Shown piece by piece: positions 3,115-18,074 of a DNA stretch of 33,029 bases (position 1 is the first letter of the stretch; every line of letters begins with the position of its first letter). The notes under the pieces were generated by a model. It had not been told where the DNA came from. It searched no databases and worked only from the letters and a program-made list of their open reading frames with translations. A program made the translations under genes and the position numbers. The DNA comes from Octopus bimaculoides (lineage: Eukaryota), in contig NC_068988.1 of the NCBI RefSeq assembly GCF_001194135.2, positions 9,934,131 through 9,967,159 of the forward strand. Direction: 5' to 3'.

Positions 3115-3171
3115 TCATTCCTTTTGGGTTTGGAGGACGACGATGGCGTAAGTCAACATGATTCCCAGAAT
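3115..3171 (-). CDS. GRL constant terminal exon C3: ILGIMLTYAIVVLQTQKE*
   Basis: Acceptor attttactctattctag|. Phase 0 gives the TYhhhhhQ signature of GR/GRL TM7b, then TGA at 3117-3115. Confidence 0.88.
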   Translation of the reverse strand: MLGIMLTYAIVVLQTQKE

Positions 3172-3252
3172 CTAGAATAGAGTAAAATGTTTATCAGAAT
3201 TTTCTCGTTGCAAGTGAACACGTCACTACCACACATAGACACGTGTGTGTGT

Positions 3253-3352
3253 CTATCTATCTATCTATCTATCTATCTATCTATCTATCTATCTATCTAT
3301 CTATCTATCTATCTACACACACACACACACACACACACACACACACACACAT
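3253..3352 (+). repeat. (TCTA)n + (CA)n compound microsatellite
   Basis: Directly visible. Confidence 0.95.
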
Positions 3353-3794
3353 ACACACTCATATGGTGGTGTTAAAAAGATCCTAGCTTTAAGAGCATCG
3401 CACAAAAACATAAAACGCTACCTGATCCTGATATCGAAAGCATGGTCTAAGGATCGTCAATGCAACGCCCTAAAATATAAGCCATACGTCTTCAAGCAAT
3501 ATAAAGAGACACCCCTCACACAAACACACATATATAAACATATACACACACATGTGTATATATATATATATATATATATATATATGTGTGTGTGTGTGTG
3601 TGTGTGTGTGTGTGTATACATATATGCATATGCACATATCTATAGTTCCCTCTATCTATCTATCTATCTATCTATCTATCTATCTATACATATAAATTTG
3701 ACATGGACGAATATTTCTTGTATACATATGATGACCTAACCCTCGCAAAAATCGAAGCCACATATCAACGCTTAATATCGGAGAATGTATATTA

Positions 3795-4478
3795 CTTTAA
3801 TGATTATAGTTATTATTGTACTAATAGACTTCCATAGTCGCTTTCTCCCGTAACTTACAAAGCCTTCTGGTTTGTTTATAACTATTATGTATAGTATTCG
3901 ACAGTTTATGTATATATACGTAAAATTTGGCTGAAATTGATGGCTGAGCGTTTGACCCAATCGGATGCACCTGTAGCCATGTAAACGTTGATGTGTAGGT
4001 TCGATACTGGCTAAAGTTAGCTCATCATTTTCAATCAATTTCTTGATATATAAATATCGCTTTAAATCGAAGAACAAATATGATTATTATGACATGTCAT
4101 TATCGTTATTATTGGTTCTAATAGGCTTCCTTAGTCGTTTTCTCTCCGTAATTTACAAAACCTTCTAGTTTATAAAGATTATATATATATTAGACAGCTT
4201 TAGTACGCATACGTAAAACTTGACTGAAAATGATGGGTGAGCGTTTGGTCCAATCGGACAAGGATGCAGTCATTTAAGTGTTGATATGTGGGTTCGATTC
4301 TGGCTAGGGTTAGCTCATCATTTTTCTATGAATTTGTTTATATACAAAATTTCCCTTTAAATCGGTGAATAAGTGTTATTATTATTATATGTTATTATTG
4401 TATTTATAGATTTCTATAGTCACTTTGTCTCCGTGACTTACGAAGCTTTCTGGTTTGTTTCTAAATATTATATATATA
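3795..4478 (+). repeat. ~290-bp tandem repeat (2 full copies + 1 partial) containing a degenerate tRNA-like module
   Basis: ctaatagacttcc at 3821 recurs as ctaataggcttcc at 4118 and as ttatagatttct near 4404. Both full units carry A-box-like TGRYCCAATCGGA and B-box-like GGTTCGAT. The third copy is cut by (TA)n and an N gap. Confidence 0.8.
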
Positions 4479-13908: not shown

Positions 13909-16551
13909 GTCTTTTACTTTTTCCTTTTTAATTTAGGAAATATCTAACTGTGAATATTTCTGGGATACTGACTGAATATATCACTGATTATATATATATA
14001 TATATATATATATGTATATATCTTTTAAATTCGTTTATGGCAACGTTAAACGGATGCAGATAAAGCTCCTGTTTTGTTATGATGGGTACCTTCTAATGAT
14101 GCTGACTAGAGAGTCAGTTTTTATGCGGTTGCATTATTGCATTATGGATATACCGAAATAAATATAGATACAGCAATATTAATATTTATAAATTCCATCC
14201 TAAAATTATATATATATGTATATGTATGTGTGTATGCCTGTGTGTATGTATATCTGTGTATAAGTGTGTGTGTGTGTGTGTGAGTGTATGTGTGCGTGCT
14301 TGCGTCCGCTTAGTAATGGATGCCTTCGCTTGCTTGCCGGAACGATACATTAATTTGGCAAAAACTTTTGTGATTATAAACTGAATTTGTCTGCTCCATC
14401 AAATTCTACACTGTACAGTTTTCGCTGCAGCTTAAAAAACAATGAATACAATTATTAAGTGCTTCTCCTTCCTAATGTAACTATTATTTAAAATCCTATC
14501 CTCATCCGTTTCGATCGTGATGTATCGCAAATATTTTATATCCGATTTTTTATTTATTTATATCTAATCTACACTCACAATGCTTAGTCCATCTAATCTT
14601 ATTCTCTATCTTCATACCCCACCACACAAAGACAAACACACACACACACACACACACACACACACACATAGGTGTGTACATATATAAATGCATACACATA
14701 TATATATGTATATTATATATACACACACACACACACACACACACACACACACACATAGGTGTGTACATATATAAATGTATACACATATATANNNNNNNNN
14801 NNNNNNNNNNNNNNNNNNNNNNNNNNNNNNNNNNNNNNNNNNNNNNNNNNNNNNNNNNNNNNNNNNNNNNNNNNNNNNNNNNNNNNNNNNNNNNNNNNNN
14901 NNNNNNNNNNNNNNNNNNNNNNNNNNNNNNNNNNNNNNNNNNNNNNNNNNNNNNNNNNNNNNNNNNNNNNNNNNNNNNNNNNNNNNNNNNNNNNNNNNNN
15001 NNNNNNNNNNNNNNNNNNNNNNNNNNNNNNNNNNNNNNNNNNNNNNNNNNNNNNNNNNNNNNNNNNNNNNNNNNNNNNNNNNNNNNNNNNNNNNNNNNNN
15101 NNNNNNNNNNNNNNNNNNNNNNNNNNNNNNNNNNNNNNNNNNNNNNNNNNNNNNNNNNNNNNNNNNNNNNNNNNNNNNNNNNNNNNNNNNNNNNNNNNNN
15201 NNNNNNNNTATATATATATATATATATATATATATATATATATATTCATATGTGTATATCTATGATGAAAATCCATACTAGCTTAGATTATATGAAGTGT
15301 GTTCCAAAACAACGGTAATAAAACGAAACAATAAACGCATAATTGATATAAGCGATACATCGATAGATTTATTGCGAAGGGGAGGCATAAAATAAGAATA
15401 TGCTTTTAAGAAACTATTGATAAATTGAAGAAAAATAAGAACAATAATCGTGCAAGATATCGTTTATAAAACAATAATTGAAATAATCCAGATTGCATAG
15501 AAATATCTCTTTTCATTGCTTGAGAGGTGGTATTGTGTCAAAAATTCACGAGTCTCTTTCGATAATTAAGTCACTCCACCAATCTAACGTGCAAATCCGC
15601 ATCCATTAATTTGAACGATGAAGTTATTACGTTAGATAATTTGGAAATACTAATGGAGACAGAAACTGCTTAGCACATAGTACTAATCGTATTATCCACC
15701 ATCCATCTATCTGTCAATCTATAAATCAATCAACCTCTCACACCGCTCTCTGTCAATCTCTCTCTCTCTGTCAATCCATCCATCAGTCTGTCCGTCCGTC
15801 CGTCCACCTGTTTCTCTCTCTGTCTCTCTCTGTCTGTCTCTGTCTGTCTGTCTGTCTCTCTCTCTTTCTTTCTTTCTCTCTCTCTATGTTTCTATCTCCA
15901 TCGCCCTCTCCGCTATCATTCTATCTGTTCGATTCTCTCTCTCTGTCTCTCTCCCTCTCTCTCCCTCTCTCTCTATATATTTATATACATGCATACATAT
16001 ATATGTTTATATATACTCACACGCACACATGCATGAATGCATAAGTGCCTACATACTAACACAATACAGGTATACATACATACATATATATATATATATA
16101 TATATATATATATATATATATATATATATATANNNNNNNNNNNNNNNNNNNNNNNNNNNNNNNNNNNNNNNNNNNNNNNNNNNNNNNNNNNNNNNNNNNN
16201 NNNNNNNNNNNNNNNNNNNNNNNNNNNNNNNNNNNNNNNNNNNNNNNNNNNNNNNNNNNNNNNNNNNNNNNNNNNNNNNNNNNNNNNNNNNNNNNNNNNN
16301 NNNNNNNNNNNNNNNNNNNNNNNNNNNNNNNNNNNNNNNNNNNNNNNNNNNNNNNNNNNNNNNNNNNNNNNNNNNNNNNNNNNNNNNNNNNNNNNNNNNN
16401 NNNNNNNNNNNNNNNNNNNNNNNNNNNNNNNNNNNNNNNNNNNNNNNNNNNNNNNNNNNNNNNNNNNNNNNNNNNNNNNNNNNNNNNNNNNNNNNNNNNN
16501 NNNNNNNNNNNNNNNNNNNNNNNNNNNNNNNNNTATATATATATATATATA

Positions 16552-16752
16552 TGTGCCTGTGTTTGTCCCCCAACATCGCTTGACAATCGATGCTGGTGTG
16601 TTTACGTCCCCGTAACTTAGTGGTTCGGCAAAAAAGACTGATAGAATAAGTACTAGGCTTACAAAGAATAAGTCCAGGGGTTAATTTCTGAGACTTAAGG
16701 CGGTGCTCCAGCATGGCTGCAGTCAAATGATTGAAGCAAGTAAAAGAGTAAA
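16552..16752 (+). mobile_element. SINE family A 3' half (5' half probably in the N gap)
   Basis: ttgtcccccaacatcgcttgacaatcgatgctggtgtgtttacgtccccgtaacttagtggttcggc...gcggtgctccagcatggctgcagtcaaatga. Confidence 0.85.
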
Positions 16753-17045
16753 ATATATATATAATACGTTGATAGACAGATATCTATTTATAAGTATATA
16801 CAAATACTTATATATGTCTGTGTATGCATGCATACGCATATATATATATGTATAAACCTATAGCAGCTGGCATAAATAAAATTCCTATTTAATAGAATAA
16901 CAGGATTAATTGTTTTGTTTCTTTTGTTTTTTATTTATCTATTTTTTTTGCTAACTTCACTTAAAAGTAAAAATTTGCTTAAATGAATGAAGAAATTGAA
17001 ATGATATTAATGTAAACAGAGATGAAATAATATTGTCATACATAC

Positions 17046-18074
17046 CATAAAATGTATCCGGAAACCTCGCAGAAAAATATACGCGGAATGGCAAACCTTT
17101 CCAAGACTTAACATTATTACATATTTATATTCCAGCACATGAGATAATCCATTTCTCCACCCATAAAGAAGGCTGAAGATACAAATTTTACCGCTCAGTA
17201 TTGTGAAAAATGTTTGCATTTGCGTCATTTTATTTGTTAAACGGAGTAGGTTGCACACTTTTTGAAAATGGCTGCATAGAATATTGATATCTGTATTATA
17301 CTTCTTGAAATCTGAGTCGTCTTTGGTCTTATACCGTTTTAAGTAGGAAGACATTAGCCTCAACTCTTTCAAAATAAGATCATGCATTACATTTGATGCG
17401 GATATGTAAAAATAGTAAGGAACAATCTCTACGAAATGAATACAGTATCTTAACACAAGTATTGGTATGTGATCAATACTGTCCATTGGTAGAGGATAGA
17501 GGTATATCTTAAGCAAAAGATTCGTCCTGTTTACAAGAACAGGACACAGTACCTCCATTATGAGAGAAATAATAACGAACATTATCATGGAGAGATATTG
17601 CTTACAGAGTGTTTTTTTGTACATCGTCTCACGGTATTTGAGATCGCATTCTAATGATTTGAATTCAGTAAATTCTCTTATGATATCTATGGACATGTCT
17701 GCTTGAAAAGCTCTATCAAATAAAGTGTACAAAGAAATAATATTGTCACCAACAATTAAGCAATTAAAAATTACTACTGATGGAGTATGTCTGCTGTAAG
17801 CCACAGGTAAAAAGCTTATCACACGAATACAATCCAAAGCGTACAAAATTATTACTAATAAGCGGATGATATATAAAATACGTTCCTTTATGTTATATAA
17901 ACGCCAAATTCTTAAATTCATTTTAATATTCACGAGGGCGTAACAGTTTTGTACACTTTTAAAATATTTCAATAAACAAGTGTCCCGAATTTTTTTGCAG
18001 TGTGTTATAATCGGCAGGCCATTTGGCGCCATCTTATTTTTCATTAGCGATCGAATTGTAAATGTGTCCGACAT
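17046..18074 (-). CDS. Gustatory receptor-like (GRL/7TMIC) variable first exon V3, 343 codons, S0-TM6
   Basis: Uninterrupted ORF starting aatATGtcgga (same context as V1). Six hydrophobic segments and GR-like motifs (LYPL, ILKELRLM, HFQKVCNLLRLTNKMTQ). Paralogous to V1 and V2. Ends ATG|GTATGTATGA with the phase-0 donor at 17045-17044. Confidence 0.88.

Follow-up and report, generated by a model that had tools for sequence, protein, structure and literature searches.

The question raised by the 33,029-nt stretch of Octopus bimaculoides DNA analyzed here (assembly GCF_001194135.2, contig NC_068988.1, positions 9,934,131 to 9,967,159, hereafter the window) is whether three similar exons on its minus strand belong to three genes or to one. 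A preliminary description, made from the letters of the sequence, had proposed that these variable exons (V1, V2 and V3) are alternative first exons which share a single set of three constant exons downstream (C1, C2 and C3), and that their products are gustatory-receptor-like (GRL) proteins of the seven-transmembrane ion channel superfamily. Our analysis indicates that the stretch very probably represents one such GRL gene, LOC128248505 in RefSeq, with a variable/constant cassette organization.

Variable exons, constant exons and the orthologous locus

Within the window, which has a GC content of 34% and many microsatellites, three long open reading frames (ORFs) are found on the minus strand at positions 8737-9900, 12868-13908 and 17007-18074. 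The ends of the V exons contained in them are homologous: when trimmed to the aligned ATG at one end and, at the other, to the GT that first follows the conserved block, all three stop at the same codon position, and the ten bases that follow V1, V2 and V3 are identical (GTATGTATGA, phase 0). The part of the first ORF that lies upstream of the V1 ATG, starting at 9900, is microsatellite read-through. The V exons match each other by tblastn with E-values of 1e-82 to 1e-103, far above chance in DNA of 34% GC, and the V1, V2 and V3 proteins are mutually 41-48% identical. Joined in frame to C1-C3 they yield products of 413, 401 and 414 amino acids (aa), respectively. The six exon coordinates, their strand, phase and peptides were thus recovered exactly as first described, and so were the product lengths and the paralogy of three V exons that share a phase-0 donor and lack the seventh transmembrane segment (TM7). 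The features are listed in Table 1.

Table 1. Exons and read-through tails of the O. bimaculoides window, together with the exons of two further cephalopod loci, L002 and L005, whose coordinates refer to those loci.
Feature	Position	Strand	Description
V3 variable exon	17046-18074	-	ATG at 18074; 343 codons; S0 to most of S6; phase-0 donor GTATGTATGA from 17045
V2 variable exon	12919-13908	-	ATG at 13908; 330 codons; phase-0 donor GTATGTATGA; use in mRNA inferred only
V1 variable exon	8755-9780	-	conserved ATG at 9780; 342 codons; phase-0 donor GTATGTATGA
C1 constant exon	6901-6969	-	peptide ISKIRDRIYNINVPEYSIEMVSK; AG/GT, phase 0; end of the S6 cytoplasmic extension and start of S7a
C2 constant exon	5055-5144	-	peptide INLVLSRINTGTIGISIGGIAVISPMLFVE; AG/GT, phase 0; S7a, linker and start of S7b
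C3 constant exon	3115-3171	-	peptide ILGIMLTYAIVVLQTQKE, then stop (included); TAG acceptor; pore helix S7b with TM7 motif TYxxxxxQ
Read-through tail past the V1 donor	8737-8754	-	VCMKI, then stop; intron sequence, noncoding in spliced mRNAs
Read-through tail past the V2 donor	12868-12918	-	intron sequence likewise
Read-through tail past the V3 donor	17007-17045	-	intron sequence likewise
L002, O. sinensis, V exons	10001-11014, 23267-24277		
L002, O. sinensis, C exons	27093-27164, 30160-30258, 37704-37781		
L005, Sepia pharaonis, V exons	one ending at 10510; ~36578-37522		
L005, Sepia pharaonis, C exons	52323-52397, 64760-64873, 70331-70435		

The assembly of the window contains seven runs of N, each flanked by simple repeats. 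The gap closest to any exon (18160-18423) is located 86 nt upstream of the V3 ATG and the remaining ones are 328-1308 nt away from exons; as all of them are intronic or upstream, no reading frame crosses a gap. Four gaps fall in the V3-V2 and V2-V1 intervals. The locus was compared with its orthologue in O. sinensis (L001, 52 kb, free of N), which contains V3, V2 and V1 followed by a single C1-C2-C3 set, with the donors conserved. The order and orientation of the segments around every gap of the window are colinear with L001, and the exon order was also confirmed by the RNA contigs described below. In place of the two gaps between V3 and V2, O. sinensis has microsatellite of 0.4-0.6 kb; the gap of 797 N has a counterpart of about 3.4 kb, and near the gap of 10 N this species contains about 11.5 kb of extra sequence with Tc3-like transposase, reverse-transcriptase and Pif1/Helitron-like fragments. 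As the O. sinensis counterparts are longer than the gaps, the lengths of the introns from V1, V2 and V3 to C1, which measure 1785, 5949 and 10076 nt as assembled, are minimum estimates, so that the values of about 1.8, 5.9 and 10.1 kb first reported hold for the assembly and only as lower bounds for the genome.

A tblastn search with the 71-aa constant peptide detected one copy in the window and one in the gap-free O. sinensis locus, with no second C1-C3 set in either, in agreement with the claim that V2 and V3 have no private constant exons. Between V2 and V1 of O. sinensis, two weak and collinear matches (L001 28195-28269 and 28864-28947) might have been relics of private C1/C2 exons; they were ruled out, given their E-values of 0.2-1.1 and their in-frame stops; one of these C-like matches lies opposite an ORF with a Pif1 2B domain, Helitron-like, on the other strand. 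Past C3, an AATAAA is found at 2948, and Rfam and tRNA scans of the window gave no match.

Sequence comparison between the two octopus species revealed different degrees of constraint along the gene. V3 is 91% identical to its O. sinensis orthologue, and the sole length change in V2, which keeps the same donor, is an in-frame 3-nt indel. The ratios of nonsynonymous to synonymous substitution (dN/dS) were 0.38, 0.40 and 0.52 for V3, V2 and V1, respectively, whereas that of the C exons was 0.14, a combination of relaxed and strong constraint that would be anticipated if a receptor diversifies around a fixed channel core.

Public annotation already contains part of this arrangement. The preliminary description had anticipated that annotation pipelines would call three separate single-exon genes, which turned out to be incorrect: RefSeq has the single gene LOC128248505 ("uncharacterized protein") with two isoforms, of which X1 (XP_052825838.1, 288 aa) starts at a Met inside V3 and includes C1-C3, and X2 (XP_052825840.1, 95 aa) consists of the last 24 residues of V1 followed by C1-C3. 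In O. sinensis, isoform X1 of LOC118764447 (XP_036361081.1) corresponds to V3 plus the constant exons. Public annotation thus implies the cassette, although in a truncated form, without V2 and unnamed. The O. vulgaris entry CAI9727297.1 (P0005, 170 aa) has the first 98 residues of V1 (ending in VVHNTHP) joined straight to C1, implying an internal V1 donor; the join represents either splicing of a minor form or an artefact of gene prediction.

Other observations concern the introns. The V2-V1 interval of O. sinensis (L001 15246-32760) spans 17.5 kb compared to about 3.1 kb assembled here, and contains Tc3-like transposase, RVT_1 and Pif1 2B (Helitron-like) fragments, while a zf-RVT fragment is located immediately before C3 (L001 41055-41567); the gaps in O. 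bimaculoides may hide similar insertions. In the C1-C2 intron of the window, positions 5776-6324 of the minus strand contain an open frame of 182 codons, within a segment that is locally richer in GC and 87% conserved with O. sinensis (L001 37318-37795). The frame has no Pfam match and may be what remains of an old mobile element, or an ORF that arose by chance.

Splicing of the variable exons in RNA

Public RNA runs were used, both as contig sets (including X13, X25 and X26) and as raw runs (including X24), the latter sampled at about 6%; RNA was matched to repeat-free sub-stretches of the locus only, and junctions were read from the loose ends of contigs. A 371-nt contig of X25 comprises 27 nt of C3, the whole of C2 and C1, and positions 17046-17230 of V3, whose side reads ...FLRGFRIHFM in reverse complement; the match to V3 resumes at the exact base at which the C1 part stops. 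The transcript represented by this contig bypasses V2 and V1 to reach C1. Similarly, a 245-nt contig of X26 contains C2, C1 and positions 8755-8869 of V1, the V1 side reading ...FQRGIQVDNL, and a 175-nt contig of X13 contains C1, C2 and C3. Contigs of X13, X25 and X26 show C2 flanked by C1 and C3 sequence, and past position 5055 those of X13 and X25 continue as ILGIMLTYAI, which is C3. Further coverage of the variable exons was found at 17057-17639 of V3 (X13 contigs) and at 9462-9767 of V1 (X13 and X25 contigs), and the 6% sample of the raw run X24 provided reads on V3, C1 and C2, and none on V1.

These data demonstrate that the junctions 17046>6969, 8755>6969, 6901>5144 and 5055>3171 are real and base-exact, which accounts for four of the five predicted junctions; the fifth one, 12919>6969 from V2, was not found. 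Consequently, the proposal that one locus produces three isoforms is backed by RNA for V3 and V1, and V2 is without RNA in any run examined. Two outcomes that the preliminary description had regarded as incompatible with its model were looked for in the same data. Transcripts ending at the read-through stops were not observed, as no RNA coverage was seen directly downstream of the V1 and V3 donors, where the contigs end or switch precisely; and junctions were not restricted to V1, given that the one between V3 and C1 is also present. No V-to-V joints were seen among the RNA contigs, and contigs end within the V exons.

As for V2, its words were absent from every indexed RNA run. One run containing all V2 words, X4, was rejected as an RNA source, as its contig passes straight through the donor and hence represents DNA. 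On the other hand, V2 is, judging from its substitutions, under purifying selection: dN is lower than dS (dN/dS 0.40; Fisher test, p = 4.7e-5), and the chance that its frame would stay open after 88 random substitutions is 2%. This pattern suggests that V2 is probably functional, with restricted expression. In the protein collection, word-index searches gave two clusters each and missed P0005 and P0006, both of which were recovered by an exhaustive profile search.

Two noncoding regions of the window also attracted RNA matches. In the V1-C1 intron, pieces of 31-60 nt within 7605-7780 reach a very high RNA-contig depth (about 1,500 in X13) and 67 raw reads of X24, all of them partial fits; this sequence, unique within the window, is probably a piece of a repeat, or else of some abundant transcript whose gene lies elsewhere. 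An interspersed repeat of about 200 nt resembling a short interspersed element (containing CGTAACTTAGTGGTTCGGCAAAA and GGCGGTGCTCCAGCATGGC) occurs in introns and in the 3' flank, at 16548-16753, 2828-3020, 2374-2523, 4850-4938 and 31068-31112, as well as in the O. sinensis locus (L001 34242-34452, 38677-38886 and 42089-42256). It is hugely abundant in RNA contigs (word depth >100,000), in many sequence variants, and has no tRNA or Rfam match.

Relationship to the gustatory receptor family

The assignment of the products to the gustatory receptor (GR) and GRL family, as originally proposed, was upheld by transitive homology and by a structure model, with no direct match to Pfam 7tm_7. A profile built from the locus (A1) was searched against 1.8 billion representative proteins and retrieved 27 matches, all of them molluscan where the source was named (Octopus, Sepia, Patella, Lymnaea, Batillaria, Saccostrea and Haliotis). 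Ten of these matches were scanned with Pfam: eight contain 7tm_7 (E-values of 1e-7 to 1e-26), most of them also Trehalose_recp, and the other two have no Pfam match. Among the full-length proteins tested, all of which match 7tm_7, the score of P0008 is 31.7 bits for a cut-off of 26.6, and P0018, P0020, P0021, P0023, P0025, P0028 and P0029 have E-values of 1e-11 to 1e-26. A wider profile (A2) matches Orco, Gr64a, MhOR5 and BmGr9 with E-values of 2e-8 to 1e-3, and the paralogue P0007 carries the name "Gustatory receptor" in UniProt.

An AlphaFold2 model of the V3 isoform (pLDDT 78.6, pTM 0.78) was compared with the PDB by Foldseek, and the top 23 matches were all insect odorant receptor (OR), Orco or GR chains (probability 1.00, TM-scores of 0.37-0.65), the next match having an E-value of 0.3. 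The model has the fold of an OR/GR subunit, with seven helices, long S4-S6 and a split S7a/S7b. In it, the variable part extends from S0 to residue 343 inside S6, C1 completes S6, C2 forms S7a plus the linker, and C3 forms S7b. In OR/GR structures, S2-S4 and S6 contribute their outer halves to the ligand pocket, S7b lines the pore, and the anchor is formed around S7a.

A phase-0 intron before the S7 region is ancestral in the GR family. Here there are three phase-0 introns (V|C1, C1|C2 and C2|C3), with homologous positions and exon lengths in a second octopus locus, in a cuttlefish locus and in a bivalve GRL, where the exons are of equal length (23 aa, 30 aa and then the TM7 exon). Conserved 3' introns are a criterion for GR/GRL membership, and a motif T-Y-h-h-h-h-h-Q-F in TM7, near the C-terminus, is a feature of the family (PMC7746228). 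The C3 motif LTYAIVVLQTQKE (TYAIVVLQT) has the T, the Y and the Q, with five hydrophobic residues between the last two, and mollusc homologues have TYAIVVIQF and TYAVVVLQV. Taken together, transitive homology, the AlphaFold model, the TM7 motif and the conserved 3' introns identify the predicted protein as a GRL. A role as a channel and in chemosensation is plausible, keeping in mind that several GR/GRL members serve other roles.

Proposed mechanism, rival explanations and comparable systems

In the mechanism that we propose, each V exon, with its own start codon, would encode the protein from S0 up to and including most of S6, and it is this region that makes up the ligand pocket in insect OR/GR structures. 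Transcription starting upstream of one V exon would produce a pre-mRNA with a single 5' donor, and this would be spliced to the first acceptor, that of C1, so that any downstream V exons would leave as part of the intron. C1-C3 would then complete S6 and supply S7a as the anchor helix and S7b as the pore helix, the latter with TYxxxxxQ. The locus would in this way give rise to receptor subunits that differ in their ligand-facing parts and are identical in pore and anchor, and the isoforms could possibly co-assemble through their shared S7.

Several points weigh against a three-isoform GRL gene with this mode of expression. Pfam 7tm_7 (PF08395) gave no match at E<=1 to the three assembled isoforms, nor did Trehalose_recp match them above its gathering score; the locus-only profile A1 found no match among PDB sequences; and the last residue of the TM7 motif is T, not F. 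RNA support for V1 and V3 is thin, with contig depths of 2-5 and few X24 reads, and V2 has neither reads nor contigs in X24, X28, X29, X30, X13, X25 and X26 (three raw RNA runs and four RNA contig sets). Likewise, no V2-type protein was found in the protein collection, where V1- and V3-type ORFs of other species are present. A separate promoter for each V exon is an assumption drawn from Gr28b, the protocadherins and UGT1A, even if a start site upstream of each V exon, which would have a donor and no used acceptor, would explain exon choice most simply. In addition, a TTTTTAG located about 22 nt upstream of the V1 ATG (9781-9802), conserved in O. sinensis (L001 32738-32759) and out of frame with the V donors, could be a candidate 3' splice site for an upstream noncoding exon.

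These points have to be weighed together with the rival explanations. According to one of them, the V exons are stand-alone single-exon genes without TM7 that end at 8737, 12868 and 17007, the spliced forms being minor. The read-through ORFs do exist, and Logan-derived ORFs of other species (P0001 and P0004) end likewise, though their source contigs may be genomic. Nevertheless, RNA contigs change to C1 precisely at the donors, with no RNA coverage of the early intron past V1 and V3, the donors are conserved across species and paralogues whereas the read-through tails are not conserved as coding sequence, and a subunit without S7b would have no pore helix, all of which makes this explanation highly improbable. 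Even less weight, close to none, is given to ordinary tandem genes whose private constant exons for V2 or V3 are concealed inside assembly gaps. For such exons there would be the four gaps in the V3-V2 and V2-V1 intervals, including the 797-N gap with its 3.4-kb counterpart, but the gap-free O. sinensis locus contains no second C set, the weak C-like matches there carry stops, the gaps between V3 and V2 are microsatellite in that species, and RNA joins V3 to the distal C1 across V2 and V1.

A two-isoform gene, in which V1 and V3 are used and V2 is a recently silenced exon that is no longer transcribed or spliced, would fit the absence of V2 from RNA runs in which V1 and V3 do occur (X13 and X25), its absence from the protein collection and the RefSeq models, which include only V3 and V1. 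We regard it as unlikely: V2 is intact in both octopus species, with the identical donor and a single indel that preserves the frame, its dN/dS and the improbability of a neutrally maintained frame speak against silencing, and the raw runs were sampled at about 6% only, while chemoreceptor isoforms are often limited to few cells. Finally, the architecture could be right and the proteins could have a non-gustatory or internal role instead of acting as external chemoreceptors. Members of the GR/GRL family that are not taste receptors include Nematostella GRL1 (development), C. elegans LITE-1 and GUR-3 (light and peroxide) and Drosophila Gr28b(D) (heat), and expression of the locus in bulk RNA runs is very low (depth 1-5). 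On the other hand, the relaxed constraint on V (0.38-0.52) relative to C (0.14) and the local duplication of the pocket part are typical of ligand-diversifying chemoreceptors, an argument that is suggestive only, and a role outside external chemoreception is best considered a genuine, if not the expected, possibility.

GRLs outside arthropods are almost uncharacterized, and studies of cephalopod chemosensation have centered on nicotinic-like chemotactile receptors and on G protein-coupled receptors. Octopus GRL genes are transcribed, spliced, under selection and organized like insect Gr28b and Gr39a, and receptor proteins outnumber genes. Full-length models of 413, 401 and 414 aa replace the truncated 95- and 288-aa products of RefSeq, which is useful for annotation and for the choice of expression constructs and leaves the known picture unchanged. 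The locus also constitutes a natural experiment: its pocket varies, and its pore and anchor helix do not.

Further cassettes were found at other cephalopod loci, for which the coordinates are given in Table 1. LOC118764606 of O. sinensis (L002, CM016866.1, 83.05-83.10 Mb) lies on the same chromosome at a distance of about 0.3 Mb. It combines one C set with two V exons of 43% identity, one of them used in the gene model of O. sinensis and the other present in a UniProt entry of O. bimaculoides. A gap-free locus of Sepia pharaonis (L005, CAHIKZ030002108.1) likewise has two V exons for a single C set, and two gene models share their 3' end there. The cassette was thus seen at all three cephalopod loci examined, with three, two and two V exons. 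In addition, the O. sinensis GRL loci LOC118764607 and LOC118764608 have "isoform X3" products and hence at least three annotated isoforms each; P0011 and P0014, the X3 isoforms of two neighboring O. sinensis GRL loci, were looked for and not located. We lean towards considering the cassette a general and conserved feature of coleoid cephalopod GRLs. On this view, it would have originated separately from the insect cassettes, at the same ancestral phase-0 intron, and would allow octopus and cuttlefish to build families of channel subunits that have pore and anchor in common and may co-assemble. No description of a cephalopod GRL cassette was found in the searchable full-text literature.

Among known systems, the octopus chemotactile receptors, which resemble nicotinic receptors, are likewise candidate ionotropic chemoreceptors of the same animal, but have a pentameric Cys-loop fold and belong to a family unrelated to GRLs (PMC11526382). 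The mollusc GRLs named "Gustatory receptor" (Lottia, Patella, Lymnaea, Batillaria and bivalves) are homologous to the octopus proteins (profile E-values of 1e-5 to 1e-21) and share with them the TM7 motif TYAIVV(L/I)Q and, in the bivalve example, a four-exon plan with three phase-0 3' introns; they differ in having a single V exon at the bivalve locus examined and, in Lottia, neighbors that resemble separate tandem genes. In Lottia gigantea (L004, KB201305.1), a 355-aa gene call at 15625-17209 has a 7tm_6 match, and a C2-like tblastn match at 18521-18622 lies inside the next call, a pyridine-nucleotide oxidoreductase; the 3' exons of this GRL may be missing from its model owing to a merger into the neighboring gene call.

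The vertebrate clustered protocadherins and UGT1A have the same layout of variable first exons, with promoters of their own (presumed in the octopus) and one donor each, which are spliced to shared constant exons while downstream V exons are removed with the intron, but they encode unrelated proteins, have far more variable exons, and their promoter choice is documented. The closest parallel is found in insects. In Drosophila Gr28b, Gr39a and Gr23a, every alternative first exon has a separate ATG and is spliced onto a C-terminal part of one or more shared exons. Insect Gr genes commonly have mutually exclusive large N-terminal exons and shared C-terminal exons encoding TM7, and beetle examples include DponGr38a-d and TcasGr214, the latter with 30 variants (PMC6720082). 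The octopus gene belongs to the same superfamily and has the same own-ATG V exons, shared TM7 tail and split at a conserved phase-0 3' intron; it differs in its host, a cephalopod mollusc, in having three shared exons, introns of 2-26 kb and only three variants, and in the divergence of its proteins, which Pfam 7tm_7 does not recognize directly. As V duplications within a locus are lineage-specific in insects, the cephalopod layout is likely convergent with that of insects. What is found in the octopus is the standard cassette layout of insect Gr genes in another phylum, which suggests that diversification of this kind has repeatedly been made possible by the ancestral phase-0 intron that precedes the S7 region.

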